Below are positions 24,301 through 64,000 of a DNA stretch of 64,000 bases, piece by piece (position 1 is the stretch's first letter; the number at the start of each line of letters is the position of its first letter). Source of the stretch: Auanema rhodensis (Eukaryota; Animalia; Nematoda); assembly GCA_964057225.1 (NCBI GenBank), contig OZ059898.1:11284001-11348000 (forward strand), read 5' to 3'. A model generated the notes under the pieces. It was given only the letters and a program-made list of their open reading frames with translations, had not been told where the DNA came from and made no database searches. Both the position numbers and the translations under genes were made by a program.

Positions 24301-26923
24301 AAACAAATTGGTTGAAAATGAAAAACATGTAATGGGACACATAGAGTTCAGTACACGTGCATCATGATGTTCTTAGGATATATAGATCTTCTGACGCAAA
24401 AAATAAGAACAAGGAGCTTTGAAATATAATGATGTTGAGAGTCTTTCGAGAATATGCAGAGTAAGACAAGAAAAAACTTTGAGGTACATACACATCTCAT
24501 ATATATATATTTTTCTTATGAATTTAATATTATATGATGTGTGATCACGTTAAAAACAGATATGAAAAACATAAAATTCGGCAAGATATGACAGTAAAAG
24601 ATAAAATGAACAAACTTTATTCAAATATTCATAGATTTACTATCACTATACATAGACAATATAGATTACTTCATATATAAGTAGATAAATCTGGTTGGAT
24701 CTTGGAAATTAAAATTTACAGGCTTAGTTTTAACTATGGATATCGCATCTCTGTCTCTTCTCAATGAAACATATATGATGCATTTTCAAGAATTATTTTA
24801 TTACAATGAACTTGAGAGAAAATATTTTTAAATGTTCATATTTATATAATTTTTCAATTATTATATTGTATATTTCAGAACATTTATGTTAAATACATAT
24901 TTGTTTATGTAAATGTTAGTATGTTGACATTGTATCGAATACATGATTTTGCTGTTTTTCAACTATAATAGTCGAAAAAAAAACATATTTTAAGTTTATC
25001 TTTAATATTCAAAAAAAAAATTCAAGCATTCATTGAGAACATATAGATTAAAGGATTTCGAAAGGGCTTCGAAACTATGTATATTTGGATAGAATTATGG
25101 GGGAGGGCAGTTGATGTCTGAGGTTACACTTCAACGGATATATGGCAAGAGGATTTCCTGTTCAATGCCAAGGGTGTTGAATTCGTCTGCATTCCGAGTC
25201 TCACACCAGTACGTCATCAGCTTTCAGTGTATTCCCTATTTCGAATTTTCTATGTTTATTTTCAAATATATATTGATTTAGTAAGTTATAAAAAGTGATA
25301 GCAGGTGATCAAATAAAAATCGTTAAGAAAAACGCTCAGTTACATACATATTGGAAAATTATTCTAATATGACCTGTTTTCATTAATGAAAAATATTTTA
25401 GAAAACTAATGAATCTGTCAGATGAGCGGGGATAATATCATTACAAACAGATACAAAGTAGAGGAAACAGGTAATTAATTTAAAATTTCTAAAGACACGC
25501 AATATCTATTGTACAAAATATTCCGTGACAAAGTAACAGCGAAGGAAAAGAAAGAGAAGCGGGGAGATAACGATGGGGAAGAAGAAGTAATGAAAGAGCA
25601 GATGAGAGTCAGTTCCATTCAGGACCATTCATTTAATCATGTGCTATTGAACGTCCAACTCAATTAACAATCCAAGAATCTATAAAGCCATTCTAATTCT
25701 GAACCTAAATAAATAAAAACTTTCTATGTACAAATGTATTTAACGCGTGCTTGATTTACTCAGTTAAAAGTGTGAAATATCCGTCCAAAATAGAAGATAA
25801 AAATCATTTAAGCAACATAAGGAAAGCAGACATTTACTGAAATGTAATGAACATGGCGTAGTTGAATAAGCTAAAAAAGATGCAGAAAGAAAGGAGAAAA
25901 ATTATGTGAATCTAACAGTAAAATGACTTTTATTTGAAATCTTACATAATATTTTGCATTAATTTTTTTAATTCACCAAATATCAACGTCAAACTTACCA
26001 TTCTTTTTTGAAAACCGAATTTAAAGGTTGAATTAATTCACTAATTATATAATTTTGAAAACAAAATTGATCAGTGCTATATAGTGAAGAATAATAATAA
26101 ATGCATGCAATTATGAAATCAGAACAAATATTAAAACAGTTGAAAAAAAAAACTCGAAATACGCTAAAATGCATGGAATTGACATGGAATTGACATGATA
26201 ATACATTGATCAACAGCACTATATTTGAATTGATTTTGATAAATAAAAAAAGCAACTCTTCAGCAAGACTAAGAAAATAAAATGAAGAAATTGCTAGAAG
26301 TATAAAAACAAAAAAATCGTTTTGAAAACGAATACACAGATGGGAAATTATGTAATTGAGCATGCATACATACATATGCTAGCTATTAAAAGATAATAAT
26401 AAAAAACATTAAAAACAAAATTTTCAAATAAATTTCAGAAAAATCAGATTAATTTTAACAGAAGTATGAAAAGTAATAACAACAGTTTTCAAGGTAAAGT
26501 AGAAACGATAACGCAGAAACGAAAAATTATAATTCCAAAATTGTATATTCTGTTTATATTATTACATGATACGAAAATATGTTTGGAATGATAAATATTG
26601 AAATACTTCATACGCTAGATGAAGCTATTATCGGCCTCTACAAAAGAAACTACTTCTTTTCTAGTCTTATAAACAATCATTGTTAACGTCTAATCGTACG
26701 CATACATTAATAATGCAAAATGTTTATGATAGCACTAAGTTCGAAATCATTTACGATGCGACGGGGTAAGATTCGCGTGGATGAATTTCCAGTCATGCAT
26801 ATTTTATCAACAGCTTATCTAAACGATATACCTCGAATATGAAAGTATATACTTCATTTGAGCTTGAAACATTAAGGTCAAATGAATCTATCACTTTAAC
26901 TGTAAAGTAAAATCCTTCTACAA

Positions 26924-27005
26924 GCAGTCATGTCCGAGTGGTTAAGGAGATTGACTAGAAATCAATTGGGCTCTGCCCGCGTAGGTTCGAATCCTGCTGA
27001 CTGCG
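26924..27005 (+). tRNA. tRNA-Ser(AGA), first copy of the array (representative unit)
   Basis: GCAGTCATGTCCGAGTGGTTAAGGAGATTGACTAGAAATCAATTGGGCTCTGCCCGCGTAGGTTCGAATCCTGCTGACTGCG. Acceptor stem GCAGTCA/TGACTGC, anticodon arm ATTGA-CTAGAAA-TCAAT, long variable arm GGGC-TCT-GCCC, T-loop TTCGAAT, discriminator G. Confidence 0.98.
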
Positions 27006-27009
27006 AATA

Positions 27010-27033
27010 TTTTGCATGAGAAATCAATTTTTT
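27010..27033 (+). terminator. Pol III oligo-dT terminators of the tRNA unit (repeated in every unit)
   Basis: T4 begins 5 nt after the tRNA 3' end and a T6 run lies at 27028-27033; further T runs follow. Confidence 0.8.
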
Positions 27034-30000
27034 GATCCCTTTTGATCTTATTCCAAAAAGTACGAGATCATTGCGTCTATCACTTGAACTGTGAAGTATA
27101 TTCCCTCTACAAGCAGTCATGTCCGAGTGGTTAAGGAGATTGACTAGAAATCAATTGGGCTCTGCCCGCGTAGGTTCGAATCCTGCTGACTGCGAATATT
27201 TTGCATGAGAAATCAACTTTTTGATCCCATTTGATCTAATTCCAATAAGTACGAGAACATTGCGTCTATCACTTTAACTGTAAAGTATATTCCTTCTACA
27301 AGCAGTCATGTCCGAGTGGTTAAGGAGATTGACTAGAAATCAATTGGGCTCTGCCCGCGTAGGTTCGAATCCTGCTGACTGCGAATATTTTGCATGAGAA
27401 ATCCATTTTTTGATCCTTTTTGATCTAATTCCAATAAGTACGAGATCCTTGCGTCTATCACTTTAACTGTAAAGTATATTCCTTCTACAAGCAGTCATGT
27501 CCGAGTGGTTAAGGAGATTGACTAGAAATCAATTGGGCTCTGCCCGCGTAGGTTCGAATCCTGCTGACTGCGAATATTTTGCATGAGAAATCCATTTTTT
27601 GATCCTTTTTGATCTAATTCCAATAAGTACGAGATCATTGCGTCTATCACTTTAACTGTAAAGTATATTCCCTCTACAAGCAGTCATGTCCGAGTGGTTA
27701 AGGAGATTGACTAGAAATCAATTGGGCTCTGCCCGCGTAGGTTCGAATCCTGCTGACTGCGAATATTTTGCATGAGAAATCCATTTTTTGATCCTTTTTG
27801 ATCTAATTCCAATAAGTACGAGATCATTGCGTCTATCACTTTAACTGTAAAGTATATTCCCTCTACAAGCAGTCATGTCCGAGTGGTTAAGGAGATTGAC
27901 TAGAAATCAATTGGGCTCTGCCCGCGTAGGTTCGAATCCTGCTGACTGCGAATATTTTGCATGAGAAATCCATTTTTTGATCCTTTTTGATCTAATTCCA
28001 ATAAGTACGAGATCATGGCGTCTATCACTTTAACTGTAAAGTATATTCCTTCTACAAGCAGTCATGTCCGAGTGGTTAAGGAGATTGACTAGAAATCAAT
28101 TGGGCTCTGCCCGCGTAGGTTCGAATCCTGCTGACTGCGAATATTTTGCATGAGAAATCCATTTTTTGATCCTTTTTGATCTAATTCCAATAAGTACGAG
28201 ATCATTGCGTCTATCACTTTAACTGTAAAGTATATTCCCTCTACAAGCAGTCATGTCCGAGTGGTTAAGGAGATTGACTAGAAATCAATTGGGCTCTGCC
28301 CGCGTAGGTTCGAATCCTGCTGACTGCGAATATTTTGCATGAGAAATCAACTTTTTGATCCCATTTGATCTAATTCCAATAAGTACGAGAACATTGCGTC
28401 TATCACTTTAACTGTAAAGTATATTCCTTCTACAAGCAGTCATGTCCGAGTGGTTAAGGAGATTGACTAGAAATCAATTGGGCTCTGCCCGCGTAGGTTC
28501 GAATCCTGCTGACTGCGAATATTTTGCATGAGAAATCAATTTTTTGATCCTTTTTGATCTAATTCCAATAAGTACGAGATCATGGCGTCTATCACTTTAA
28601 CTGTAAAGTATATTCCTTCTACAAGCAGTCATGTCCGAGTGGTTAAGGAGATTGACTAGAAATCAATTGGGCTCTGCCCGCGTAGGTTCGAATCCTGCTG
28701 ACTGCGAATATTTTGCATGAGAAATGAATTTTTTGATCCCTTTTGATCTTATTCCAAAAAGTACGAGATCATTGCGTCTATCACTTGAACTGTGAAGTAT
28801 ATTCCTTCTACAAGCAGTCATGTCCGAGTGGTTAAGGAGATTGACTAGAAATCAATTGGGCTCTGCCCGCGTAGGTTCGAATCCTGCTGACTGCGAATAT
28901 TTTGCATGAGAAATCAATTTTTTGATCCTTTTTGATCTAATTCCAATAAGTACGAGATCATTGCGTCTATCACTTTAACTGTAAAGTATATTCCCTCTAC
29001 AAGCAGTCATGTCCGAGTGGTTAAGGAGATTGACTAGAAATCAATTGGGCTCTGCCCGCGTAGGTTCGAATCCTGCTGACTGCGAATATTTTGCATGAGA
29101 AATCAACTTTTTGATCCCATTTGATCTAATTCCAATAAGTACGAGAACATTGCGTCTATCACTTTAACTGTAAAGTATATTCCTTCTACAAGCAGTCATG
29201 TCCGAGTGGTTAAGGAGATTGACTAGAAATCAATTGGGCTCTGCCCGCGTAGGTTCGAATCCTGCTGACTGCGAATATTTTGCATGAGAAATCCATTTTT
29301 TGATCCTTTTTGATCTAATTCCAATAAGTACGAGATCATTGCGTCTATCACTTTAACTGTAAAGTATATTCCCTCTACAAGCAGTCATGTCCGAGTGGTT
29401 AAGGAGATTGACTAGAAATCAATTGGGCTCTGCCCGCGTAGGTTCGAATCCTGCTGACTGCGAATATTTTGCATGAGAAATCCATTTTTTGATCCTTTTT
29501 GATCTAATTCCAATAAGTACGAGATCATGGCGTCTATCACTTTAACTGTAAAGTATATTCCTTCTACAAGCAGTCATGTCCGAGTGGTTAAGGAGATTGA
29601 CTAGAAATCAATTGGGCTCTGCCCGCGTAGGTTCGAATCCTGCTGACTGCGAATATTTTGCATGAGAAATCCATTTTTTGATCCTTTTTGATCTAATTCC
29701 AATAAGTACGAGATCATTGCGTCTATCACTTTAACTGTAAAGTATATTCCCTCTACAAGCAGTCATGTCCGAGTGGTTAAGGAGATTGACTAGAAATCAA
29801 TTGGGCTCTGCCCGCGTAGGTTCGAATCCTGCTGACTGCGAATATTTTGCATGAGAAATCAACTTTTTGATCCCATTTGATCTAATTCCAATAAGTACGA
29901 GAACATTGCGTCTATCACTTTAACTGTAAAGTATATTCCTTCTACAAGCAGTCATGTCCGAGTGGTTAAGGAGATTGACTAGAAATCAATTGGGCTCTGC

Positions 30001-32818
30001 CCGCGTAGGTTCGAATCCTGCTGACTGCGAATATTTTGCATGAGAAATCCATTTTTTGATCCTTTTTGATCTAATTCCAATAAGTACGAGATCCTTGCGT
30101 CTATCACTTGAACTGTGAAGTATATTCCTTCTACAAGCAGTCATGTCCGAGTGGTTAAGGAGATTGACTAGAAATCAATTGGGCTCTGCCCGCGTAGGTT
30201 CGAATCCTGCTGACTGCGAATATTTTGCATGAGAAATCAATTTTTTGATCCTTTTTGATCTAATTCCAATAAGTACGAGATCATGGCGTCTATCACTTTA
30301 ACTGTAAAGTATATTCCTTCTACAAGCAGTCATGTCCGAGTGGTTAAGGAGATTGACTAGAAATCAATTGGGCTCTGCCCGCGTAGGTTCGAATCCTGCT
30401 GACTGCGAATATTTTGCATGAGAAATGAATTTTTTGATCCCTTTTGATCTTATTCCAAAAAGTACGAGATCATTGCGTCTATCACTTGAACTGTGAAGTA
30501 TATTCCTTCTACAAGCAGTCATGTCCGAGTGGTTAAGGAGATTGACTAGAAATCAATTGGGCTCTGCCCGCGTAGGTTCGAATCCTGCTGACTGCGAATA
30601 TTTTGCATGAGAAATCAATTTTTTGATCCTTTTTGATCTAATTCCAATAAGTACGAGATCATTGCGTCTATCACTTTAACTGTAAAGTATATTCCCTCTA
30701 CAAGCAGTCATGTCCGAGTGGTTAAGGAGATTGACTAGAAATCAATTGGGCTCTGCCCGCGTAGGTTCGAATCCTGCTGACTGCGAATATTTTGCATGAG
30801 AAATCAACTTTTTGATCCCATTTGATCTAATTCCAATAAGTACGAGAACATTGCGTCTATCACTTTAACTGTAAAGTATATTCCTTCTACAAGCAGTCAT
30901 GTCCGAGTGGTTAAGGAGATTGACTAGAAATCAATTGGGCTCTGCCCGCGTAGGTTCGAATCCTGCTGACTGCGAATATTTTGCATGAGAAATCAATTTT
31001 TTGATCCTTTTTGATCTAATTCCAATAAGTACGAGATCATTGCGTCTATCACTTTAACTGTAAAGTATATTCCCTCTACAAGCAGTCATGTCCGAGTGGT
31101 TAAGGAGATTGACTAGAAATCAATTGGGCTCTGCCCGCGTAGGTTCGAATCCTGCTGACTGCGAATATTTTGCATGAGAAATCCATTTTTTGATCCTTTT
31201 TGATCTAATTCCAATAAGTACGAGATCATTGCGTCTATCACTTTAACTGTAAAGTATATTCCCTCTACAAGCAGTCATGTCCGAGTGGTTAAGGAGATTG
31301 ACTAGAAATCAATTGGGCTCTGCCCGCGTAGGTTCGAATCCTGCTGACTGCGAATATTTTGCATGAGAAATCAATTTTTTGATCCTTTTTGATCTAATTC
31401 CAATAAGTACGAGATCATTGCGTCTATCACTTTAACTGTAAAGTATATTCCCTCTACAAGCAGTCATGTCCGAGTGGTTAAGGAGATTGACTAGAAATCA
31501 ATTGGGCTCTGCCCGCGTAGGTTCGAATCCTGCTGACTGCGAATATTTTGCATGAGAAATCCATTTTTTGATCCTTTTTGATCTAATTCCAATAAGTACG
31601 AGAACATTGCGTCTATCACTTTAACTGTAAAGTATATTCCTTCTACAAGCAGTCATGTCCGAGTGGTTAAGGAGATTGACTAGAAATCAATTGGGCTCTG
31701 CCCGCGTAGGTTCGAATCCTGCTGACTGCGAATATTTTGCATGAGAAATCCATTTTTTGATCCTTTTTGATCTAATTCCAATAAGTACGAGATCATGGCG
31801 TCTATCACTTTAACTGTAAAGTATATTCCCTCTACAAGCAGTCATGTCCGAGTGGTTAAGGAGATTGACTAGAAATCAATTGGGCTCTGCCCGCGTAGGT
31901 TCGAATCCTGCTGACTGCGAATATTTTGCATGAGAAATCCATTTTTTGATCCTTTTTGATCTAATTCCAATAAGTACGAGATCATGGCGTCTATCACTTT
32001 AACTGTAAAGTATATTCCTTCTACAAGCAGTCATGTCCGAGTGGTTAAGGAGATTGACTAGAAATCAATTGGGCTCTGCCCGCGTAGGTTCGAATCGTGC
32101 TGACTGCGAATATTTTGCATGAGAAATCAACTTTTTGATCACATTTGATCTAATTCCAATAAGTACGAGATCATTGCGTCTATCACTTTAACTGTAAAGT
32201 ATATTCCTTCTACAAGCAGTCATGTCCGAGTGGTTAAGGAGATTGACTAGAAATCAATTGGGCTCTGCCCGCGTAGGTTCGAATCCTGCTGACTGCGAAT
32301 ATTTTGCATGAGAAATCAATTTTTTGATCCTTTTTGATCTAATTCCAATAAGTACGAGATCATGGCGTCTATCACTTTAACTGTAAAGTATATTCCTTCT
32401 GCAAGCAGTCATGTCCGAGTGGTTAAGGAGATTGACTAGAAATCAATTGGGCTCTGCCCGCGTAGGTTCGGGGTGGCGGACGTTTCGTCGTCTCTAGTTT
32501 GTGAACTAGTTCAGGCTGATCATTAGAGGGCAAACTTTATGATAATGTGCTGACAAGTGCCAGTGTTCATGTAACTCGGGGTGCTATTAAAGCTATAAAT
32601 CTATAGAATTCAGTTATAAGTGGCTACATACCTTGAAGTGCCATCAAAATATAAATTGAAAAAAGCAGAAATTAAAATAAACATACAGTTCTATCAACCA
32701 GGCTATCATCAAACAGTTTCAAGTCAACAGTTACGTGAGTTCATAGTAATAGTTGTTAGTTTATCTTTTCTTTCGATAAGTTTGCTTATTCACACTTTCT
32801 CATCTTTTCTCGTTCATC

Positions 32819-34885
32819 ATGATTTTTCCTTCTACTTTCTGTCCATTTTCTCTGATGATTAACGCTCAGGGTAAATCTGTTCTTGTTTCTCAGCCTTTTG
32901 ATAATGTTCCTTCGGAGAACATAACTATCTTTTTTAATAATTCTTCGGTAAATACTCAGAATCTTGAAGTTTATTCAAATGATGTAACTTCACTCTCATT
33001 TTTGAATTTCACTCTTCCATCTTTTAATATCCCTCCATTGAGGCAGCAAAATGTTAATTTTGCTTCTGCTCTTTCTCTAGCAAATTCATCTGCGGCATCT
33101 TCTTCAGTTGAATCTGTTGCTACAGTTACTGTTCCTACTGTCAACAGCGTTCCACTGTTCTCTTCTTCTACTTCACATCTTTCTATTCAGCCTTCTTCTT
33201 CTTCTTCTGCCGTTCATTCTTCACCGTCATCTTCTCTTTCTTCTTCTCCTCCTTCTGTTTCCTCTCCTTCTTTACCTGTTCTCTCTCCTTCTTCTTCTGT
33301 TCCCTCTCCTTCTTCTTCTGTTCCCTCTCCTTCTTCTTCTGTTCCCTCTCCTTCTTCTTCTGTTCCCTCTCCTTCTTCTTCATTTTCTTCGCAATCTGCA
33401 AATCCTAACTCATACGCCGCTCTCATTGCGCCTTCTAAGCAGGGTGTACACCCCTGTTTAGAATATAAATTTGAAAACTTGCTGTATCGCTACCAATTCA
33501 GTAGTAAAAGTTCTCAAAAAGCTTATTCTATTTATCGTTGCACAGGTTGTAAACATTTGGGTAAATACACTTCTATCAAAGTAGAAAATAATGTATTTCT
33601 CGAAAATCCTATTGCTCAAAACTATCATTGTGATCCATTTTTGTTTTCTATTAACAAATGCAAAAATATCACATACTCTCTAACTCAGAATATCAAAAGT
33701 TCAGACTCATGTTTTGAGATGAAAGCATATTCCTTATTTGTCAATGAAATAAAAAAAATATTTCATGAATCTGAGTTAGAAGAGCATGAAAAGCAAGAAG
33801 TTACCTCTGCTTGGTTTCATGGTGGCTATGACAGTAGACGTAGAGCTATTACAAGGGCTTTAAGTTCTCGTAAAGACTTAAGAACATCCATGACCAATGT
33901 TCCTCTGTCTCTGTCTAAAACTATCAATGGTCGTACGTTCTTGCATTTTCATGACAGCGAGTTTCATTTGTATTTCGATACATTTTGTTTGGAACTAGCT
34001 GTTCAGCATGGTTTAACTCATTTGCTTGGGGACGGTTGTTTCAAATACCAGCCTTTGGATATGGAACAAACATATACCATCATGGGCGGTTGCAGAAATG
34101 GAACAACTGTACCTCTTTTCTATTCCATTTTAAAAAATAAGAGTAGGTTCACTTATAGAAGGCTTCTTCAACATATTGCACTAGCTCTCTCCAACGTTGG
34201 TTGCATAGTTGAAAACCTTATTTTTATCTGTGATTTTGAGATCGCTGTAATAAGGGAAGCTGAAACTATTTTTAATTCTGTTCAAGGATGTGCATTTCAT
34301 TATGCTCAGAGCTTGAACAGACGGTCTCTTCAACTGGGTTTGACACAAGCAGAGAAGCAATCCATTGAAATCAAACAATGGCATGGTCGGCTGCTGGGCT
34401 TGCTCTTCCTTCAAACTGATCTTATCTCACGGTCCGGGTTACTCAATTCTCCTGTTTCTTCTGATCATCCATCATATTCTTCTTGTCTTCAAATGATCAG
34501 TTATGTGAATGAAACATGGATTGAAGGACCTTTGCGACATTATTGGAACAAATGGGACATAAAACAGTTTCGTACATCTAATAATGTTGAATCTTTTCAC
34601 CGTAAAATGAAGACTATTTTATCTTGCTCTCATCCTCCTCTTTCTGAATTAATTACTTTTTTTCATGGTGAAAATTTGATGGCTAATCATGTCCTGATCG
34701 CTTTGTCATCGAATGTTGAGCCTGCCAGGAAAAAAAGAAAAAACGTAATTGAGAGGCAACAACGGATTGAGGTTCAGTTTGAAAACTTTAGGAGCATCTC
34801 CAATAACCGACTGCCTAATCAGCAAGAAATAATAGCATATGTCGAGGAGATGGCGAAGTTTAACACCAGAAAATCTTATTTTTGA
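32819..34885 (+). CDS. MULE DDE transposase with Ser/Pro-rich N-terminus (688 aa)
   Basis: Catalytic motifs GDGCF (D), CDFE (D), GCAFHY (CxxH), RTSNNVESFH (E); upstream YRCTGC...HC zinc-binding-like motif; basic RKKRK. True start codon uncertain. Confidence 0.9.
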   Translation: MIFPSTFCPFSLMINAQGKSVLVSQPFDNVPSENITIFFNNSSVNTQNLEVYSNDVTSLSFLNFTLPSFNIPPLRQQNVNFASALSLANSSAASSSVESVATVTVPTVNSVPLFSSSTSHLSIQPSSSSSAVHSSPSSSLSSSPPSVSSPSLPVLSPSSSVPSPSSSVPSPSSSVPSPSSSVPSPSSSFSSQSANPNSYAALIAPSKQGVHPCLEYKFENLLYRYQFSSKSSQKAYSIYRCTGCKHLGKYTSIKVENNVFLENPIAQNYHCDPFLFSINKCKNITYSLTQNIKSSDSCFEMKAYSLFVNEIKKIFHESELEEHEKQEVTSAWFHGGYDSRRRAITRALSSRKDLRTSMTNVPLSLSKTINGRTFLHFHDSEFHLYFDTFCLELAVQHGLTHLLGDGCFKYQPLDMEQTYTIMGGCRNGTTVPLFYSILKNKSRFTYRRLLQHIALALSNVGCIVENLIFICDFEIAVIREAETIFNSVQGCAFHYAQSLNRRSLQLGLTQAEKQSIEIKQWHGRLLGLLFLQTDLISRSGLLNSPVSSDHPSYSSCLQMISYVNETWIEGPLRHYWNKWDIKQFRTSNNVESFHRKMKTILSCSHPPLSELITFFHGENLMANHVLIALSSNVEPARKKRKNVIERQQRIEVQFENFRSISNNRLPNQQEIIAYVEEMAKFNTRKSYF
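33284..33381 (+). repeat. Coding 21-bp minisatellite TCTCCTTCTTCTTCTGTTCCC (SPSSSVP), about 4.7 units
   Basis: Directly visible; copy 2 has one unit fewer (36713-36789). Confidence 0.95.
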
Positions 34886-51900: not shown

Positions 51901-54900
51901 TAAAGTGATAGACGCAATGATCTCGTACTTTTTGGAATAAGATCAAAAGGGATCAAAAAATTGATTTCTCATGCAAAATATTCGCAGTCAGCAGGATTCG
52001 AACCTACGCGGGCAGAGCCCAATTGATTTCTAGTCAATCTCCTTAACCACTCGGACATGACTGCTTGTAGAAGGAATATACTTCACAGTTAAAGTGATAG
52101 ACGCAATGATCTCGTACTTATTGGAATTAGATCAAAAAGCATCAAAAAAATGATTTCTCATGCAAAATATTCGCAGTCAGCACGATTCGAACCTACGCGG
52201 GCAGAGCCCAATTGATTTCTAGTCAATCTCCTTAACCACTCGGACATGACTGCTTGTAGAAGGAATATACTTCACAGTTAAAGTGATAGACGCAATGATC
52301 TCGTACTTATTGGAATAAGATCAAAAAGCATCAAAAAAGTGATTTCTCATGCAAAATATTCGCAGTCAGCAGGATTCGAACCTACGCGGGCATAGCCCAA
52401 TTGATTTCTAGTCAATCTCCTTAACCACTCGGACATGACTGCTTGTAGAAGGAATATACTTTACAGTTAAAGTGATAGACGCAATGATTTCGTACTTTTT
52501 GGAATAAGATCAAATGGGATCAAAAAATTGATTTGTCATGCAAAATATTCGCAGTCAGCAGGATTCGAACCTACGCGGGCAGAGCCCAATTGATTTCTAG
52601 TCAATCTCCTTAACCACTCGGACATGACTGCTTGTAGAAGGAATATACTGTAAAGTTAAAGTGATAGACGCAATGATCTCGTACTTTTTGGAATAAGATC
52701 AAATGGGATCAAAAAATTGATTTGTCATGCAAAATATTCGCAGTCAGCAGGATTCGAACCTACGCGGGCAGAGCCCAATTGATTTCTAGTCAATCTCCTT
52801 AACCACTCGGACATGACTGCTTGTAGAAGGAATATACTGTAAAGTTAAAGTGATAGACGCAATGATCTCGTACTTTTTGGAATAAGATCAAATGGGATCA
52901 AAAAATTGATTTGTCATGCAAAATATTCGCAGTCAGCAGGATTCGAACCTACGCGGGCAGAGCCCAATTGATTTCTAGTCAATCTCCTTAACCACTCGGA
53001 CATGACTGCTTGTAGAAGGAATATACTGTAAAGTTAAAGTGATAGACGCAATGATCTCGTACTTTTTGGATTAAGATCAAATGGGATCAAAAAATTGATT
53101 TGTCATGCAAAATATTCGCAGTCAGCAGGATTCGAACCTACGCGGGCAGAGCCCAATTGATTTCTAGTCAATCTCCTTAACCACTCGGACATGACTGCTT
53201 GTAGAAGGAATATACTTTACAGTTGAAGTGATAGACGCAATGATTTCGTACATATTTGAATTAGATCAAAAAGCATCAAAAAATTGATTTGTCATGCAAA
53301 ATATTCGCAGTCAGCAGGATTCGAACCTACGCGGGCAGAGCCCAATTGATTTCTAGTCAATCTCCTTAACCACTCGGACATGACTGCTTGTAGAAGGAAT
53401 ATACTGTAAAGTTAAAGTGATAGACGCAATGATCTCGTACTTTTTGGAATAAGATCAAATGGGATCAAAAAATTGATTTGTCATGCAAAATATTCGCAGT
53501 CAGCACGATTCGAACCTACGCGGGCAGAGCCCAATTGATTTCTAGTCAATCTCCTTAACCACTCGGACATGACTGCTTGTAGAAGGAATATACTGTAAAG
53601 TTAAAGTGATAGACGCAATGATCTCGTACTTTTTGGAATAAGATCAAATGGGATCAAAAAATTGATTTCTCATGCAAAATATTCGCAGTCAGCAGGATTC
53701 GAACCTACGCGGGCAGAGCCCAATTGATTTCTAGTCAATCTCCTTAACCACTCGGACATGACTGCTTGTAGAAGGAATATACTTTACAGTTAAAGTGATA
53801 GACGCAATGATCTCGTACTTTTTGGAATAAGATCAAAAGGGATCAAAAAATTGATTTCTCATGCAAAATATTCGCAGTCAGCAGGATTCGAACCTACGCG
53901 GGCAGAGCCCAATTGATTTCTAGTCAATCTCCTTAACCACTCGGACATGACTGCTTGTAGAAGGAATATACTTTACAGTTAAAGTGATAGACGCAATGAT
54001 CTCGTACTTTTTGGAATAAGATCAAAAGGGATCAAAAAATTGATTTCTCATGCAAAATATTCGCAGTCAGCAGGATTCGAACCTACGCGGGCAGAGCCCA
54101 ATTGATTTCTAGTCAATCTCCTTAACCACTCGGACATGACTGCTTGTAGAAGGAATATACTTTACAGTTAAAGTGATAGACGCAATGATCTCGTACTTTT
54201 TGGAATAAGATCAAAAGGGATCAAAAAATTCATTTCTCATGCAAAATATTCGCAGTCAGCAGGATTCGAACCTACGCGGGCAGAGCCCAATTGATTTCTA
54301 GTCAATCTCCTTAACCACTCGGACATGACTGCTTGTAGAAGGAATATACTTCACAGTTAAAGTGATAGACGCAATGATCTCGTACTTATTGGAATTAGAT
54401 CAAAAAGCATCAAAAAAATGATTTCTCATGCAAAATATTCGCAGTCAGCACGATTCGAACCTACGCGGGCAGAGCCCAATTGATTTCTAGTCAATCTCCT
54501 TAACCACTCGGACATGACTGCTTGTAGAAGGAATATACTTCACAGTTAAAGTGATAGACGCAATGATCTCGTACTTATTGGAACAAGATCAAAAAGCATC
54601 AAAAAAGTGATTTCTCATGCAAAATATTCGCAGTCAGCAGGATTCGAACCTACGCGGGCATAGCCCAATTGATTTCTAGTCAATCTCCTTAACCACTCGG
54701 ACATGACTGCTTGTAGAAGGAATATACTTTACAGTTAAAGTGATAGACGCAATGATTTCGTACATATTTGAATTAGATCAAAAAGCATCAAAAAATTGAT
54801 TTCTCATGCAAAATATTCGCAGTCAGCAGGATTCGAACCTACGCGGGCAGAGCCCAATTGATTTCTAGTCAATCTCCTTAACCACTCGGACATAACTGCT

Positions 54901-57900
54901 TGTAGAAGGAATATACTTTACAGTTAAAGTGATAGACGCAATGATGTCGTACTTTTTGGAATAAGATCAAAAGGGATCAAAAAATTGATTTCTCATGCAA
55001 AATATTCGCAGTCAGCAGGATTCGAACCTACGCGGGCAGAGCCCAATTGATTTCTAGTCAATCTCCTTAACCACTCGGACATGACTGCTTGTAGAATGAA
55101 TACACTTTACAGTTAAAGTGATAGACGCAATGATCTCGGACTTTTTGGAATAAGATCAAAAGGGATCAAAAAATTGATTTCTCATGCAAAATATTCGCAG
55201 TCAGCAGGATTCGAACCTACGCGGGCCGAGCCCAATTGATTTCTAGTCAATCTCCTTAACCACTCGGACATGACTGCTTGTAGAAGGAATATACTTCACA
55301 GTTCAAGTGATAGACGCAATGATCTCGTACTTTTTGGAATAAGATCAAAAGAGATCAAAAAATTCATTTCTCATGCAAAATATTCGCAGTCAGCAGGATT
55401 CGAACCTACGCGGGCAGAGCCCAATTGATTTCTAGTCAATCTCCTTAACCACTCGGACATGACTGCTTGTAGAAGGAATATACTTTACAGTTAAAGTGAT
55501 AGACGCAATGATCTCGTACTTTTTGGAATAAGATCAAAAGGGATCAAAAAATTGATTTCTCATGCAAAATATTCGCAGTCAGCAGGATTCGAACCTACGC
55601 GGGCAGAGCCCAATTGATTTCTAGTCAATCTCCTTAACCACTCGGACATGACTGCTTGTAGAAGGAATATACTTTACAGTTAAAGTGATAGACGCAATGA
55701 TCTCGTACTTTTTGGAATAAGATCAAAAGGGATCAAAAAATTGATTTCTCATGCAAAATATTCGCAGTCAGCAGGATTCGAACCTACGCGGGCAGAGCCC
55801 AATTGATTTCTAGTCAATCTCCTTAACCACTCGGACATGACTGCTTGTAGAAGGAATATACTTTACAGTTAAAGTGATAGACGCAATGATCTCGTACTTT
55901 TTGGAATAAGATCAAAAGGGATCAAAAAATTGATTTCTCATGCAAAATATTCGCAGTCAGCAGGATTCGAACCTACGCGGGCAGAGCCCAATTGATTTCT
56001 AGTCAATCTCCTTAACCACTCGGACATGACTGCTTGTAGAAGGAATATACTTCACAGTTCAAGTGATAGACGCAATGATGTCGTACTTTTTGGAATAAGA
56101 TCAAAAGGGATCAAAAAATTCATTTCTCATGCAAAATATTCGCAGTCAGCAGGATTCGAACCTACGCGGGCAGAGCCCAATTGATTTCTAGTCAATCTCC
56201 TTAACCACTCGGACATGACTGCTTGTAGAATGAATACACTTTACAGTTAAAGTGATAGACGCAATGATCTCGTACTTTTTGGAATAAGATCAAAAGGGAT
56301 CAAAAAATTGATTTCTCATGCAAAATATTCGCAGTCAGCAGGATTCGAACCTACGCGGGCAGAGCCCAATTGATTTCTAGTCAATCTCCTTAACCACTCG
56401 GACATGACTGCTTGTAGAATGAATACACTTTACAGTTAAAGTGATAGACGCAATGATCTCGTACTTTTTGGAATAAGATCAAAAGGGATCAAAAAATTGA
56501 TTTCTCATGCAAAATATTCGCAGTCAGCAGGATTCGAACCTACGCGGGCAGAGCCCAATTCATTTCTAGTCAATCTCCTTAACCACTCGGACATGACTGC
56601 TTGTAGAATGAATACACTTTACAGTTAAAGTGATAGACGCAATGATCTCGTACTTTTTGGAATAAGATCAAAAGGGATCAAAAAATTGATTTCTCATGCA
56701 AAATATTCGCAGTCAGCAGGATTCGAACCTACGCGGGCCGAGCCCAATTGATTTCTAGTCAATCTCCTTAACCACTCGGACATGACTGCTTGTAGTAGGA
56801 ATATACTTCACAGTTCAAGTGATAGACGCAATGATCTCGTACTTTTTGGAATAAGATCAAAAGAGATCAAAAAATTCATTTCTCATGCAAAATATTCGCA
56901 GTCAGCAGGATTCGAACCTACGCGGGCAGAGCCCAATTGATTTCTAGTCAATCTCCTTAACCACTCGGACATGACTGCTTGTAGAAGGAATATACTTTAC
57001 AGTTAAAGTGATAGACGCAATGATCTCGTACTTTTTGGAATAAGATCAAAAGGGATCAAAAAATTGATTTCTCATGCAAAATATTCGCAGTCAGCAGGAT
57101 TCGAACCTACGCGGGCAGAGCCCAATTGATTTCTAGTCAATCTCCTTAACCACTCGGACATGACTGCTTGTAGAAGGAATATACTTTACAGTTAAAGTGA
57201 TAGACGCAATGATCTCGTACTTTTTGGAATAAGATCAAAAGGGATCAAAAAATTGATTTCTCATGCAAAATATTCGCAGTCAGCAGGATTCGAACCTACG
57301 CGGGCAGAGCCCAATTGATTTCTAGTCAATCTCCTTAACCACTCGGACATGACTGCTTGTAGAATGAATACACTTTACAGTTAAAGTGATTGACGCAATG
57401 GTCTCGTACTTTTTGGAATAAGATCAAAAGGGATCAAAAAATTGATTTCTCATGCAAAATATTCGCAGTCAGCAGGATTCGAACCTACGCGGGCAGAGCC
57501 CAATTGATTTCTAGTCAATCTCCTTAACCACTCGGACATGACTGCTTGTAGAAGGAATATACTTTACAGTTAAAGTGATAGACGCAATGATCTCGTACTT
57601 TTTGGAATAAGATCAAAAGGGATCAAAAAATTGATTTCTCATGCAAAATATTCGCAGTCAGCAGGATTCGAACCTACGCGGGCAGAGCCCAATTGATTTC
57701 TAGTCAATCTCCTTAACCACTCGGACATGACTGCTTGTAGAAGGAATATACTTTACAGTTAAAGTGATAGACGCAATGATCTCGTACTTTTTGGAATAAG
57801 ATCAAAAGGGATCAAAAAATTGATTTCTCATGCAAAATATTCGCAGTCAGCAGGATTCGAACCTACGCGGGCAGAGCCCAATTGATTTCTAGTCAATCTC

Positions 57901-59843
57901 CTTAACCACTCGGACATGACTGCTTGTAGAAGGAATATACTTTACAGTTAAAGTGATAGACGCAATGATCTCGTACTTTTTGGAATAAGATCAAAAGGGA
58001 TCAAAAAATTGATTTCTCATGCAAAATATTCGCAGTCAGCAGGATTCGAACCTACGCGGGCAGAGCCCAATTGATTTCTAGTCAATCTCCTTAACCACTC
58101 GGACATGACTGCTTGTAGAAGGAATATACTTTACAGTTAAAGTGATAGACGCAATGATCTCGTACTTTTTGGAATAAGATCAAAAGGGATCAAAAAATTG
58201 ATTTGTTATGCAAAATATTCGCAGTCAGCAGGATTCGAACTTACGCGGGCAGAGCCCAATTGATTTCTAGTCAATCTCCTTAACCACTCGGACATGACTG
58301 CTTGTAGAAGGAATATACTTTACAGTTGAAGTGATAGACGCAATGATCTCGTACTTTTTGGAATAAGATCAAAAAGAATCAAAAAATTGATTTCTCATGC
58401 AAAATATTCGCAGTCAGCAGGATTCGAACCTACGCGGGCATAGCCCAATTGATTTCTAGTCAATCTCCTTAACCACTCGGACATGACTGCTTGTAAAAGT
58501 AATATACTTTACAGTTAAAATGATAGACGCAATGATCTCCTACTTTTTGGAATAAGATCAAAAGGGATCAAAAAATTGATTTCTCATGCAAAATATTCGC
58601 AGTCAGCAGGATTCGAACCTACGCGGGCAGAGCCCAATTGATTTCTAGTCAATCTCCTTAACCACTCGGACATGACTGCTTGTAGAAGGAATATACTTTA
58701 CAGTTAAAGTGATAGACGCAATGATCTCGTACTATTTGGAATAAGATCAAAAGGGATCAAAAAGTTGATTTGTCATGCAAAATATTCGCAGTCAGCAGGA
58801 TTCGAACCTACGCGGGCAGAGCCCATTTGATTTCTAGTCAATCTCCTTAACCACTCGGACATGACTGCTTGTAGAAGGAATATACTTTACAGTTAAAGTG
58901 ATAGACGCAATGATCTCGTACTTTTTGGAATAAGATCGAAAGGGATCAAAAAATTGATTTCTCATGCAAAATATTCGCAGTCAGCAGGATTCGAACCTAC
59001 GCGGGCAGAGCCCAATTGATTTCTAGTCAATCTCCTTAACCACTCGGACATGACTGCATGTATAAGGAATATACTTTACAGTTAAAGTGATAGACGCAAT
59101 GATCTCGTACTTTTTGGAATAAGATCAAATGGGATCAAAAAATTGATTTGTCATGCAAAATATTCGCAGTCAGCAGGATTCGAACCTACGCGGGCAGAGC
59201 CCAATTGATTTCTAGTCAATCTCCTGAACCACTCGGACATGACTGCTCGTAAAAGGAATATACTTTACAGTTAAAGTGATACACGCAATGATTTCGTACT
59301 TTTTGGAATAAGATCAAAAGGGATCAAAAAATTGAATTCTCATGCAAAATATTCGCAGTCAGCAGGATTCGAACCTACGCGGGCAGAGCCCAATTGATTT
59401 CTAGTCAATCTCCTTAACCACTCGGACATGACTGCTTGTAAAAGTAATATACTTTACAGTTAAAGTGATAGCCGCAATGATTTCGTACATATTAGAATTA
59501 GATCAAAAAGCATCAAAAAATTGATTTGTCATGCAAAATATTCGCAGTCAGCAGGATTCGAACCTACGCGGGCAGAGCCCAATTGATTTCTAGTCAATCT
59601 CCTTAACCACTCGGACATGACTGCTTGTAAAAGTAATATACTTTACAGTTAAAATGATAGACGCAATGATCTCGTACTATTTGGAATAAGATCAAAAGGG
59701 ATCAAAAAGTTGATTTCTCATGCAAAATATTCGCAGTCAGCAGGATTCGAACCTACGCGTGCAGAGCCCAATTGATTTCTAGTCAATCTCCTTAACCACT
59801 CGGACATGACTGCTTGTAGAAGGAATTTACTTTACAGTTAAAG
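45962..59843 (-). repeat. tRNA-Ser(AGA) array block D (inverted): one fragment plus 73 full-length genes
   Basis: Fragment 45962-46015; full genes from 46123-46204 to 59732-59813 at 189-bp spacing, with one 190-bp unit near 48540. Confidence 0.96.
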
Positions 59844-60188
59844 TGGCGTTCCGTTATGCTCTCACGTCGATCCTATAGACCAATAAAGCCTACAAGATGA
59901 GTGTGATAGTATTCCAGATGTAGCGGTAGATAAAGAGCATAATGGATAAACATAAGACTCGAGAAAGAAAGGTTTATTATGTCTACATGATTACAATAAG
60001 TTATATAAATCTACATAAAGATATAAAGTGAAAGAGAGCTAAGAAAGGAAGACCAACCATCCCTAGTCATTCCATAAGGCAAAGCTGAAGTCTGTGTTCC
60101 ATATGAAGGGCGTGTCGTCCTCTCTCAGCCTCATGTCGTCTGATTCTAACCCGCCTGCTACGTATTGATTTCCGAATGGAACGTGCCA
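59844..60188 (-). repeat. Putative Gypsy 3' LTR (~345 bp)
   Basis: Minus strand reads TGGCACGTTCC...GGAACGCCA (TG..CA with terminal inverted repeat), with a TATA-like stretch (~60001-60009) followed by AATAAA (~59973-59978). The PPT is weak (GAAAAAA) and the second LTR is outside the window. Confidence 0.6.
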
Positions 60189-60881
60189 TTTTTTCGAGTT
60201 TATGTCGCGTCCTCGCGAATAGCAAAATATGTGGTTTGTTTCAATCGTAGCAGAAGGTTTAGTTTTTAAAAAATAAAAATTACAATGTTAACATAAAAAT
60301 AGTAAAGATAAATTACAATATAATGTTAAACAATATTATCTGAAAAGAATTTAATAAAAGTTATTTGAAAATACATGAATATTAAGGAATAAAACAATCT
60401 TTTAGAATACCAGGGCTATATTTTGTCAGCGAGAGTGCGCAAAATAGGTTTTTAGGCACGACGCTGCATGTCTAACTTGTTTGAGTATAGAGAAACGAGA
60501 GTCATGCTATATTATCGATGGAGCTAGCATGTTTCTTCAGCGTATTCAAAGCGAATTGTAATAATAAAAAAAAATTAAATTAAATTCCATATAATTTCCG
60601 GAATTGAATCATTAACTACTTGATAAGGACTGTTGCTCAGATGAATATGCAATATAATGTCTCTTATCTTTCATTTCTTCTTTATTTACGGGAAATTATT
60701 TGAAATTGATGAAGTTTTATAATCATATATGCTTTGAAACTGAAATGCTTTTTGATTATTAGCTTACATCTCGTCTTACTCAAGTTTTTCAATGATATAA
60801 TAATATTAATAGCTCTGGTTTTTTAAAAGAGAGTTGATACAAAGTTTTACAATAATTTTATCAATCTCGAAATTATTTCTT

Positions 60882-63800
60882 TCATCGTCTTCTTCTTGGT
60901 GGTAGCCAATTTTGGTCCGATGGGTCTTCTGGTTCTGTTTCTTCAGTAGAGTCATAGTTATCGTTACCATTTATGACTTTTATGATCTCAATATCGCTGT
61001 CGTCGTCCGTGTCATAAGTCGTTGTATTGGATCGCGTGTTTTGAGCGATTGTATGGTCCATTTTGCGTTCAAAAAGTTTGAGATTGTCTTTGTGTACGTC
61101 TTGAATTTTTCCAAATGGATTCTTGAGTTGTACCATGTTTCCTTCAACGTTGATGACTTCAAATGGTCCATCATATGATTTGCGAAGCTTTTGACCTGGT
61201 TTATGCGCTTTAATTGCTAACATAACTTGGTCTCCTTTTCGGATATCTCTTTCTTCTATTCGTTGTCGTCCATCATGTTTTCTCTTCGCGGTTTCTTGAT
61301 GTTTTGCAAGATTTTCTTGAATTATGGTTCTTCTTTCTCCTCTGATATATTCGGTATTCTCAATTTCTTCCAAGATCTCTGGTTGTAATGTCTCGGGGAA
61401 TAATTCTTTGTCTAATCTCATACGACTTTCTTTTCCGAATAATGCTATGTATGGAGAGATTCCTGTGGTTGCGTGTGTTATTGTATTTAACGCAAAAGTA
61501 ATTTTTGGTAAATACATGTCCCAATCGGTTACGTCTTCGTTGAGATAGTGTGTTAATCCTTCTTCTAGCGTTCTGTATAGTCTTTCGACTTGTCCATTAG
61601 AGTTTTTCTGATGTGGGAGTGTTGGCTCGTGTTTAATGCCAAGTTTTTCACACATTTCTTCAAATTTCTTTGATACAAAATTAGATCCACGATCGGTTAT
61701 TAAACGATTTGGTGGTCCAAAAATATATACGAAATTCCTGAGGAATCTATCAATGATGACATCGGTGACAATTGTTGGTATAGCGATGGTTGTCGCCCAT
61801 TTGGAGAATGAATCTTGTATTGTTAGGACATAATTGTTGTTTCTTTTTGAAGTAGGGAATGGTCCCATAATATCCATATGTATTCTCTCAAATGGTTTTG
61901 ATGGTATTTCAAATTGACCCATAGGCTGAACGGTCATAGCGTGAGGATCTTTCTTCCTTTGTGCGCATTTAACGCATTGTTTCACAAAAATTGCTATGTC
62001 CGTTTGCATATTTGTCCAGCAGAATCTTCGTAGTATGGCTTCTTTAGTTTTGTTAATTCCTTGATGTGCTCCAATTGCTGGGTCTTCGTGAAATTCTTCG
62101 ATAACCTTGTTGATAAGTTCGCTTTCCCTTGGTAAAATCAAAGCTGGGTGTGGTCGTTTTCTGCTTGGTTTTGTGTATAACATGTTGTCAATGACACAAT
62201 AACGATCATTAGAAAGCATGTTCTTTTTCGCTCTGTATTCTATTTCGGCGATAGTTCTCTTTATCCAAGGTGTATCCTCTTGAATTGCTCTAATGTCAGG
62301 TACATTAACGAAATTAATTTGAGCTTTCGGAATTTCTTTTGTTTTCTTTTTCTTTTCCGGTTTAGGATCGTTTGCTTCATCTCCAATGTATCGTGAGAGA
62401 GCATCACAGACTTTGTTTAGTCTGCCTTCTCGGTATCTTATCTCGATATCGTATTCCTGTATGACTAATTGAAATTTTGCTAGTCTTCCAAAAAGGTCTC
62501 TACGAGTCAATAAGCTTGTTAATGGTCGATGGTCTGTGATACAGATTGTATGTGATCCAAGTATATATGTTCGAAACTGAGCTAAAGCGTATACGAGTCC
62601 TAACGCTTCTATTTCAATAGGAGCATAGTTGCGTTCCGCTTTTACAAGTTTACGGCTTGCAAATGCAATTGGATGTAAATTTTTGAGTGGTTCATTGGGA
62701 TCTTCAGGTTGTAATAACACTGCTCCCACTGCGATATTACTACCGTCACTTTCTATAATGAACATACGGTCTGATCTTGGTGGTTTTAAGACCGGTGCTT
62801 GGATCAATTTTCTTTTTAATGTATCAACAGCTTGTTGACTTTTGTCATTCCATTGGAATTCCACATCAAGTTTTGTAAGGTCGTATAAAGGGCTTGCGAT
62901 GTGTGCAAAATCCTTAATAAATTTCCGAAAAAATCCTACCATTCCCAAAAATGCTCTTACTCCTGTAGGTGACTTTGGAGCAGGATAGTCTTGAATGGCG
63001 GATACTTTCTGTGGATCTGGTTTGACTCCATCTCTTCCGACAATTAAACCAAGAAATTTTACTTCAGGTCTTGCAAAAGCGCATTTCTTGAGTTTAATTT
63101 TCATGCCTAATTTCTTTACTTCTCTGAGAATCTCAGCTATATCGTCAAGATGTTGTTCTGCAGTGTCTGATATAACAAGTAAATCATCCAAATAAACAAA
63201 GAGTCGGCATTTACATCGGCTTTGAAGGTATCGCACTGCTGTTTGAAAGGTATGTGGCGCTCCACATAACCCCATAGGCATCCTTCTATATTGATAAGTA
63301 CCGGTGTTTGTTGTAAATGCTGTTAATGGTCGATCTGATTTCTTTAATGCTATTTGGAAGAATCCGGATACTAAATCAAAGTTAGAAAAATATTGTGATC
63401 CGGCTGCCATATCGACAATGTCAGAGATGTTAGGTATGATGTACGTTTGCTTGCGAGTGACGTTATTTAGAGCACGGAAATCGGTTACGAAACGGAATGT
63501 TTCATCTTTCTTTTTGACTAAAACTACAGGGCTATTGAAAAGAGATGTGGATGGTTCAATTATATTTTGCTTCAGCATCTCCTGTACCTGTCTTTCGACT
63601 TCTTCTTGTTTGCCTATAGGGATACGCGTTATACGCGGTCTAGGCATGTCCATATCTGTTCTTAGAGGTATTGAATGCTCTACAGGTCCTTTAAATAGTC
63701 CTATTTGTTTATCCTCATTTAAAAATGCATCTCTATTACGTAGAATACAAAGCTGAAGAAGATCTTTTTGTTCTTTAGTTAGGTCGGCGTCTTTTAAATC

Positions 63801-63989
63801 AAGATCGTTCATAAAGTCCTGAGGAAAATGAGGTAATTTATTTTCCCAATCCGCTTCGGGTGGTATATAGTCTGGATTGTGTTCGGTCGTAAAGATCTCG
63901 TATTGTGGCAGTACGCCTATTTTTGCTTTGTCAATAATGTTTCCGGGTGATAGATCTATAGGATGATCAGTGTTGTTTTTGAATGTCAT
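60882..63989 (-). CDS. Gypsy Pol polyprotein (RT, RNase H, integrase), 5'-partial
   Basis: SPVVLVKKKDETFRFVTDFRALN, DLVSGFFQI, MPMGL, YLDD; RNase H ESDGS...PIAFASRKL, TDHRPL; HHCC finger and DDE core (HMDIMGP, TDRGSNF, NGQVER). The frame stays open to the window edge. Confidence 0.96.
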   Translation of the reverse strand: MTFKNNTDHPIDLSPGNIIDKAKIGVLPQYEIFTTEHNPDYIPPEADWENKLPHFPQDFMNDLDLKDADLTKEQKDLLQLCILRNRDAFLNEDKQIGLFKGPVEHSIPLRTDMDMPRPRITRIPIGKQEEVERQVQEMLKQNIIEPSTSLFNSPVVLVKKKDETFRFVTDFRALNNVTRKQTYIIPNISDIVDMAAGSQYFSNFDLVSGFFQIALKKSDRPLTAFTTNTGTYQYRRMPMGLCGAPHTFQTAVRYLQSRCKCRLFVYLDDLLVISDTAEQHLDDIAEILREVKKLGMKIKLKKCAFARPEVKFLGLIVGRDGVKPDPQKVSAIQDYPAPKSPTGVRAFLGMVGFFRKFIKDFAHIASPLYDLTKLDVEFQWNDKSQQAVDTLKRKLIQAPVLKPPRSDRMFIIESDGSNIAVGAVLLQPEDPNEPLKNLHPIAFASRKLVKAERNYAPIEIEALGLVYALAQFRTYILGSHTICITDHRPLTSLLTRRDLFGRLAKFQLVIQEYDIEIRYREGRLNKVCDALSRYIGDEANDPKPEKKKKTKEIPKAQINFVNVPDIRAIQEDTPWIKRTIAEIEYRAKKNMLSNDRYCVIDNMLYTKPSRKRPHPALILPRESELINKVIEEFHEDPAIGAHQGINKTKEAILRRFCWTNMQTDIAIFVKQCVKCAQRKKDPHAMTVQPMGQFEIPSKPFERIHMDIMGPFPTSKRNNNYVLTIQDSFSKWATTIAIPTIVTDVIIDRFLRNFVYIFGPPNRLITDRGSNFVSKKFEEMCEKLGIKHEPTLPHQKNSNGQVERLYRTLEEGLTHYLNEDVTDWDMYLPKITFALNTITHATTGISPYIALFGKESRMRLDKELFPETLQPEILEEIENTEYIRGERRTIIQENLAKHQETAKRKHDGRQRIEERDIRKGDQVMLAIKAHKPGQKLRKSYDGPFEVINVEGNMVQLKNPFGKIQDVHKDNLKLFERKMDHTIAQNTRSNTTTYDTDDDSDIEIIKVINGNDNYDSTEETEPEDPSDQNWLPPRRRR

Positions 63990-64000
63990 GGTAATTGAAT

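Follow-up and report, generated by a model that had tools for sequence, protein, structure and literature searches.

Tandem arrays of RNA polymerase III (Pol III) genes, both tRNA and 5S ribosomal RNA (rRNA), are in our judgement probably the places where several transposon families of the nematode Auanema rhodense preferentially integrate, and this is the best joint explanation of the insertion patterns described here. The analysis started from a 64-kb stretch of scaffold C6 (C6:11284001-11348000, referred to as the window), in which an array of tRNA-Ser(AGA) genes is interrupted by two copies of a MULE DNA transposon, a BEL/Pao retrotransposon and a Gypsy-like endogenous retrovirus. Resolved to the nucleotide, MULE and BEL insertions were aimed at Pol III genes, independently of tRNA identity and orientation. 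For the Gypsy-like element the array niche was supported and the targeting is unsettled; a loose tether to Pol III chromatin and plain accessibility are both compatible with the data.

The genome assembly used for the survey comprised 180,911,798 bases, with the seven large contigs adding up to 165,496,814. Forty seeded random 1-kb points distributed over the seven large scaffolds served as the control. A tRNA gene was present at 3/40 points, a non-tRNA satellite at 19/40 (with families including 351-, 176- and 342-bp repeats) and other DNA at 18/40. Based on these random points, tRNA gene bodies constitute 1.3% of the bases, and non-tRNA satellites fill about half of the genome. A first-look search with the Rfam tRNA model returned approximately 28,000 candidates genome-wide. 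When compared with the control, BEL/Pao flanks were associated with tRNA genes in 17/18 cases (p = 1e-10) and Gypsy flanks in 12/17 cases (p = 3e-6), and 8/10 young MULE sites were located inside tRNA or 5S gene bodies (p of about 7e-14 against approximately 1.3% of the genome). No BEL or MULE flank matched a non-tRNA satellite (0/18, p = 1e-4, and 0/10, p = 0.004, respectively, versus 19/40), and two to three Gypsy flanks did (2/17 in the comparison with the control, p = 0.01). The first-pass annotation of the window, which was derived from the sequence alone, had proposed a tRNA-array niche with its own transposon community and had suggested a per-family analysis of the flanks. Run genome-wide, this analysis revealed a bias towards tRNA or other Pol III arrays in all three families, and the outcome that had been named as refuting the proposal, an equal density in other satellites and no flank bias, was not seen. 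The niche is supported for all three families, and targeting for MULE and BEL, whereas for Gypsy only an enrichment at the level of the arrays was found.

A sharp positional preference was observed for the BEL/Pao family. Twenty 3' ends were fetched and three of them were dropped, which left 18 valid flanks including that of the window copy. The three dropped ends had looked like non-tRNA flanks and turned out to be 5' long terminal repeats (LTRs) followed by the primer-binding site, TGGTGCATCGGC, complementary to the 3' end of tRNA-Gly(GCC). The tRNA-associated flanks were positioned in or at most 64 bp from a tRNA gene and represented 15 anticodon types (16 with the tRNA-Ser of the window); 13 of the 18 flanks fell within the tRNA gene body. 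Perfect 5-bp target duplications were identified in 9 of the 12 genome-wide copies for which both flanks had been fetched, as well as in the window copy. In six tRNA species (Gln, Thr, Asp, Lys-TTT, Phe and Pro), the duplication corresponded exactly to canonical nucleotides (nt) 49-53, i.e., the T-stem 5' strand, which directly precedes the T loop, and either orientation was used. The chance of six events falling in one 5-nt register is low (p of about 5e-10). Outside this hot spot, sites were dispersed through the tRNA body and across the first few bases upstream of it.

The MULE family was surveyed by scoring all 28 genomic candidates, of which 10 young sites were counted. The host genes included those in the tRNA-Ser, tRNA-Glu(CTC), tRNA-Ile(AAT), tRNA-Glu(TTC) and initiator tRNA-Met arrays, along with 5S rRNA genes in arrays shared with U2 and U4 small nuclear RNA (snRNA) genes. 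Target duplications of 10, 9, 9 and 8 bp were determined in tRNA-Ser, tRNA-Ile, tRNA-Glu(TTC) and initiator tRNA-Met, respectively, and of 9 and 8 bp at two 5S sites. In the tRNA genes these duplications covered canonical nt 48-57, 50-58, 51-59 and 49-56, which correspond to the B box and the T arm, in both orientations. Two copies residing on different scaffolds, one in a 5S gene and the other in a tRNA-Glu(TTC) gene, were only 0.08% apart, so that both tRNA and 5S genes serve as targets for a single MULE lineage; judging from this sequence divergence, the pair points to a very recent movement of the lineage between the two target classes. The MULE loci also drew attention to mixed tandem arrays, in which 5S rRNA genes are combined either with U2 or with U4 snRNA genes, and a U1 gene adjoins another MULE copy.

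The assignment of this transposon to the MULE superfamily was based on several features. The proteins of the two window copies (688 and 681 amino acids) matched the MULE domain PF10551 with an E-value of 1.3e-5 and 26 bits, just below the curated cut-off of 27.6. The nearest ESM Atlas clusters of the first protein were annotated as MULE or MULE plus FLYWCH (score 0.96, 204 shared features), and a CxxH motif and an NNVESFH-type signature were visible in the transposase sequence. The terminal inverted repeats, GGGTGGCGGACGTTTCGTCGTCTC and GAGACGACGAAACGTCTCAGACCC, are complementary at 20/24 positions and are conserved in eight copies. The length of the target duplications fits the expectation of approximately 8-11 bp for MULE/MuDR elements.

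The insertion data were considered in the light of passive accumulation, according to which insertion is random and copies merely survive in redundant arrays under relaxed selection, turning the arrays into a transposon graveyard. The tRNA arrays are highly redundant and loaded with transposons: transposon DNA accounted for approximately 36% of the array span in the window, non-array DNA for 34.7 of 60 kb (approximately 58%) in six 10-kb stretches sampled further along the same array, and all four window copies are damaged as mobile units. However, the satellites match or exceed the tRNA arrays in redundancy and should be at least as safe, yet they were the compartment in which insertions were depleted or absent, so a pure safe-graveyard model does not fit. 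Moreover, the copies are 97-100% identical and therefore young, and selection would be unable to put insertions on the same 5 nt in six tRNA species. For MULE and BEL the bias is resolved to the nucleotide and recurs in many tRNA species, something that relaxed selection cannot produce, and we regard passive accumulation as very improbable.

Analysis of the Gypsy-like family gave a less focused picture. The best 20 3' ends of 503 first-look candidates were taken; two flanks that were internal to tandem copies and two duplicates were removed, and 17 independent flanks were tested. At C7:11337728-11352989, tandem Gypsy-like copies share their LTRs (LTR-internal-LTR-internal) and the flanks read into the primer-binding site of the next copy. 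The 12 flanks found in tRNA arrays were distributed all over the 189-bp unit, which would be expected if the elements simply entered whatever DNA was accessible. In such an explanation no dedicated targeting exists: Pol III genes are open and nucleosome-poor in the germline, the megabase satellites are compact, any integrase or transposase would enter tRNA arrays more often, and local hot spots would arise where DNA is bent or exposed within the Pol III complex, with no evolved tether behind them. The avoidance of satellites by all three families and the dispersion of the BEL sites outside the hot spot are also in line with accessibility. It does not readily account for the concentration of six BEL events in six tRNA species on one register, nor for the MULE duplications in tRNA genes, all of which straddle nt 48-59. 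Furthermore, a single MULE lineage was found in tRNA and 5S genes and, among the 28 candidates, not in other open DNA, and the sample contained no BEL or MULE insertion in genic DNA of the retained part of the genome, itself also open. Accessibility bias is therefore considered rather unlikely as an explanation of the whole pattern, and preferred integration into Pol III gene arrays is retained.

Several observations weigh against the preferred integration of these families into Pol III genes, or at least limit it. The Gypsy insertions in gene bodies (3/12) were not in excess over the share of the body in the unit, and those in the tRNA-Ser unit were scattered (positions 158, 143, 75-78, 71, 176 and 113). 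No obvious B-box sequence is common to the two 5S target sites of the MULE, and simple recognition of a sequence therefore leaves part of its targets unexplained. The BEL copy of the window is off the hot spot of its own family: its 5-bp duplication, GGCAG (41905-41909 and 45962-45966), falls in the variable arm (tRNA nt 50-54), at a distance from the B box that exceeds that of the hot spot by 8 nt. In this sole event in a class II tRNA, the linear distance from the 5' end of the gene equals that of the hot spot, and this single event hints that the BEL site is measured from the 5' side of the tRNA gene. Finally, the survey sampled assembled, retained copies, in which integration and retention are separated solely by the satellite control and the nucleotide hot spots, and it comprised approximately 10-20 events per family and 40 control points.

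As for the mechanism, the MULE transposase and the BEL integrase would be positioned by a feature that Pol III genes share. If Ty3, Ty1 and the Dictyostelium elements are taken as a guide, the likeliest candidates for this feature are the B-box DNA (GGTTCGANNCC) or a factor bound there, TFIIIC or the Pol III complex. The staggered MULE cuts would then bracket the B box and the 5-bp BEL stagger would fall immediately 5' of it. A bound factor appears to be a likelier reader than the DNA itself, because the same MULE lineage uses two 5S sites, where the B box is missing, and because BEL also lands elsewhere in or just upstream of tRNA genes; direct recognition of the T-arm DNA is an alternative that the data allow. 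Strikes within gene bodies are presumably tolerated on account of roughly 20,000 redundant gene copies, and the arrays are also reported to be discarded from the soma. In its fullest form, the proposal is that three superfamilies independently evolved Pol III-gene-directed integration and live mainly in germline-restricted tRNA and 5S arrays, and that they include the first MULE and the first BEL/Pao elements integrating inside tRNA genes at a defined position beside the B box, presumably by reading a B-box-bound factor. We put this forward tentatively, as a serious possibility.

The array in the window was mapped with ARAGORN and by register-by-register comparison against one unit. ARAGORN identified 122 tRNA-Ser(AGA) genes with a 189-bp period, 32 on the plus strand (26924-35726) and 90 on the minus strand (38664-59813). 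The unit comprises the tRNA at nt 1-82 and a spacer at nt 83-189, and the array starts at approximately 26887. It is broken at four places (32471-35125, 35900-38541, 41910-45961 and from 59847 to the end of the window), which leaves a plus-strand arm (26887-32470), approximately four plus-strand units separating the two MULE copies (35126-35899), a first minus-strand block (38542-41909) and a second one (45962-59846), the latter with one 190-bp unit near 48535. Together with the Pfam searches, these data bear out the initial description of two MULEs, a BEL/Pao and a Gypsy element inserted in the array with open reading frames (ORFs), and every junction given there (tRNA nt 15, 50-54 and 66, and the 5' flank for Gypsy) was correctly placed. 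The extent of the array had been underestimated. Instead of the approximately 33 kb supposed, it is at least 164 kb long: minus-strand tRNA-Ser units restart 7 kb beyond the end of the window and are still present at C6:11448000, so that the Gypsy-like element, described as lying at the array edge, is in fact internal. The non-array DNA in the six stretches sampled further along the array included two more Gypsy-like elements, LTR-bounded 3.3-kb relatives and one solo LTR.

The BEL/Pao element of the window (41910-45961, plus strand) consists of a 19-bp remnant of the 5' LTR (41910-41928), an open ORF of 951 amino acids (42101-44956) and a 415-bp 3' LTR (45547-45961). The ORF encodes an integrase tail (DUF5641, E-value of 2.4e-8) followed by a Phlebovirus_G2 envelope domain according to Pfam, and apart from the DUF5641 tail, gag-pol is missing. 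The 19 bp match the start of the 3' LTR and are followed by a jump to the end of pol, identifying the window copy as an internal deletion derivative; other copies of the family carry both LTRs. The LTRs and the 5-bp target duplication agree with BEL/Pao elements, for which duplications of 4-6 bp are typical. Two overlapping ORFs of 139 amino acids on opposite strands, with no Pfam match, are located between the envelope gene and the 3' LTR (45046-45513).

The Gypsy-like element occupies the window from 59847 to 64000 on the minus strand, with the 3' LTR at approximately 59847-61160, and runs past the window end to a total of 11.1 kb. The portion of its ORF inside the window (1035 amino acids) encodes reverse transcriptase, RNase H and integrase (Pfam). 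In the natural contiguous genomic sequence across the window boundary, a single open frame of 2915 amino acids was found, in which Pfam placed gag, a herpesvirus-gB/Monjiviricetes-type fusion domain, protease, reverse transcriptase, RNase H and integrase in this order. Frames of 2815-2915 amino acids in the window copy and in another copy, on the plus strand, thus have an envelope-like class III fusion glycoprotein domain between gag and protease and not downstream of pol. The LTR terminus is located 33 bp upstream of the 5' end of the neighbouring tRNA gene. At the other end, the 5' LTR and primer-binding site are absent and the element is joined to tRNA nt 4-6. With no terminal repeats in its 11.1 kb, it was considered as an LTR-less element with target-primed-type truncations. 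This was rejected, since other copies carry a 5' LTR, the end of which equals the 3' LTR end, followed by the primer-binding site TGGAGGTTCC, the complement of the 3' end of tRNA-Gln(CTG); the window copy is merely 5'-truncated. A 4-bp duplication, GTCA, surrounds an LTR-bounded relative, and the two further Gypsy-like elements of the array are 75% identical to the window copy in pol. Both the succession of gag, protease, reverse transcriptase, RNase H and integrase and the LTRs, primer-binding site and short duplication seen in other copies agree with Ty3/Gypsy (Metaviridae). The primer-binding sites of both Gypsy and BEL match tRNAs whose genes these elements invade.

The two MULE copies are found on the plus strand at 32471-35125 (MULE1) and 35900-38541 (MULE2), with open transposase ORFs of 688 (32819-34885) and 681 amino acids (36248-38293). 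Their left ends, starting in MULE1 with the left inverted repeat at 32471, both directly follow tRNA nt 66. MULE1 stops 6 bp short of the full right end, where the array picks up at tRNA nt 48-51. In MULE2 both terminal inverted repeats are intact, and beyond the complete right repeat the sequence continues with tRNA nt 15-1 in reverse complement, exactly at the strand switch of the array. The two copies differ by 0.27% substitutions and are sisters with a tree support of 0.98. The initial count of two copies is right in that both are present, but they may derive from one event rather than two. Treating them as independent strikes on one nucleotide was rejected for these sister copies, and their independence is unsupported because the 21-bp length variant they share falls in a repeat tract.

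The block formed by MULE1, the four units and MULE2 recurs in inverted orientation 66 kb away (C6:11388079-11394141), with MULE1 100% identical between the two blocks. In the inverted block, the array runs on the same strand on both sides of MULE2', which is flanked by a clean 10-bp duplication, CGTAGGTTCG, of tRNA nt 57-66; this duplication has been kept there and not in the window copy. The clean duplication identifies the window MULE2 as the same insertion, with the breakpoint of an inverted duplication exactly at its terminal repeat, and the cut at this breakpoint was presumably made by a transposase, to judge from the junction sequence. A perfect palindrome centred beyond the window was rejected: the BEL copy is not mirrored and the array between the MULE pairs runs one way, so the MULE block underwent an inverted duplication without forming a full palindrome. 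All in all, the window copies were damaged after insertion by internal deletion, LTR loss, trimming of a terminal repeat and an inverted duplication with its breakpoint at a MULE end. Another MULE copy at a strand switch was noted at C1:6560888-6566542, where antisense tRNA-Glu(CTC) ending at nt 50 lies to the left and sense tRNA-Glu(CTC) from nt 54 to the right. The arrays on its two sides are oppositely oriented, so MULE ends at array inversions recur.

Such rearrangements raise the question of whether a few true insertions were multiplied by unequal crossing-over, or by misassembly, into an apparent preference. The identical left junctions of the sister copies, the inverted repetition of the block and the duplicates among the Gypsy flanks all fit local multiplication. 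It accounts only for the copy number in the array of the window, whereas the events counted genome-wide occurred in arrays of at least 15 tRNA species on seven scaffolds with distinct target duplications, and duplicated flanks had been taken out before the tests. Local amplification or assembly artefact is accordingly hardly credible as the source of the pattern, and integration into Pol III gene arrays remains the preferred explanation.

Among known systems, the Dada elements stand alone as DNA transposons known to target tRNA, 5S and snRNA genes; they are DDE transposons found inside multicopy small-RNA genes (tRNA, 5S, U1 and U6) (PMC3706591; PMC8869645). They generate 6-7-bp duplications, lack terminal inverted repeats, and each family selects one RNA gene by sequence, mostly at the anticodon or A box (PMC3706591; PMC8869645). 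Dada copies with mismatched flanks, ascribed to one-ended cleavage and rejoining, resemble MULE2. In contrast, the MULE described here produces 8-10-bp duplications, has 24-bp terminal inverted repeats and inserts at the B box in five or more tRNA species and also in 5S genes, and its nearest protein clusters are MULE plus FLYWCH. Its membership in Dada, with the features of that superfamily taken from PMC3706591, was rejected on duplication length, termini and target range.

LTR and non-LTR retrotransposons aimed at Pol III genes are represented by Ty3, Ty1 and Tj1 in yeasts and by DGLT-A, Skipper-2 and TRE5/TRE3 in Dictyostelium (PMC5911963; PMC6101501). Their targeting evolved convergently in unrelated lineages and has been read as a safe-site strategy (PMC5911963; PMC6101501). 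The BEL and Gypsy elements are likewise concentrated at tRNA genes, and BEL uses either orientation, as does DGLT-A. However, the yeast and Dictyostelium elements insert outside the gene at a set distance on its upstream or downstream side, in compact unicellular genomes, whereas BEL integrates inside the tRNA coding sequence, Gypsy keeps no fixed distance from the tRNA gene, and the host is an animal whose tRNA genes form huge tandem arrays. A 2018 review of Pol III-targeting retrotransposons contains no BEL/Pao or metazoan case (PMC5911963). The non-LTR elements R1/R2 and the piggyBac element Pokey in ribosomal DNA (rDNA) are also specialists of redundant tandem RNA genes, with several unrelated elements per array, but they recognise one fixed 28S rDNA sequence, while here a gene class (Pol III, B box) is shared by MULE, BEL/Pao and Gypsy-like partners. 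Cer7-type BEL/Pao elements of Caenorhabditis were reportedly described with a phlebovirus-like envelope by Malik, Henikoff and Eickbush in 2000. Like the window BEL, Cer7 is a nematode BEL/Pao with a Phlebovirus_G2-type fusion protein downstream of pol, and we know of no tRNA-gene specificity of Cer7. Literature outside subscription journals, where 'BEL/Pao' was not searched by name, yielded neither a MULE or BEL/Pao family reported to target tRNA genes nor any account of transposons in A. rhodense tRNA arrays.

The safe-site use of multicopy RNA genes and its convergent evolution were already known; new are the elements involved, the position of hot spots inside the gene, the presence of three superfamilies together and the connection with eliminated DNA. 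Insertion at tRNA genes as safe sites is a textbook example of convergence, known mainly from yeasts and social amoebae, where elements insert beside the gene, and from Dada, with one RNA gene for each family. Here, three superfamilies are involved in one animal genome, two of them with nucleotide hot spots inside the gene, beside the internal promoter. What the integrase or transposase reads, be it B-box DNA, TFIIIC or the Pol III complex, becomes directly testable in a culturable nematode, and site-directed integrases of this type are of practical interest for safe-harbour gene delivery. Transposon ecology is also tied to the programmed elimination of DNA: should the arrays prove restricted to the germline, the elements occupy DNA that is never seen by the soma. 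The germline assembly of A. rhodense was reported to total 180.9 Mb, with 165.5 Mb in seven scaffolds and 19,554 tRNA genes, and approximately two thirds of the genome are tandem repeats eliminated from somatic cells (10.64898/2026.08.27.747507). Germline-restricted arrays of 5S, tRNA and U2 genes were located in chromosome centres, and half of the eliminated protein-coding genes carry transposon domains, with site preference left unmentioned (10.64898/2026.08.27.747507).

The window belongs to the middle part of a 21.6-Mb scaffold with ordinary genes adjoining. The first-pass annotation had reported no transposon coding sequence in the 26.9 kb preceding the array; in agreement, Pfam found no transposon domain in the ten longest ORFs of 1-26886, and Rfam gave no match in the window before the array start. 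These ORFs showed weak, sub-threshold matches to the WD40 family and one FMO-like exon match above the Pfam cut-off. Candidate host-gene exons with such matches are located at 4846-5454 (minus strand) and 16006-16425 (plus strand), within 11-22 kb of the array edge, and the tRNA-Ser array thus appears to border ordinary genic DNA. A 29-nt palindromic motif at elimination boundaries has been presented as a figure (10.64898/2026.08.27.747507). A 29-nt near-palindrome with two mismatches was noticed at 15042-15070, in the unique DNA upstream of the array.

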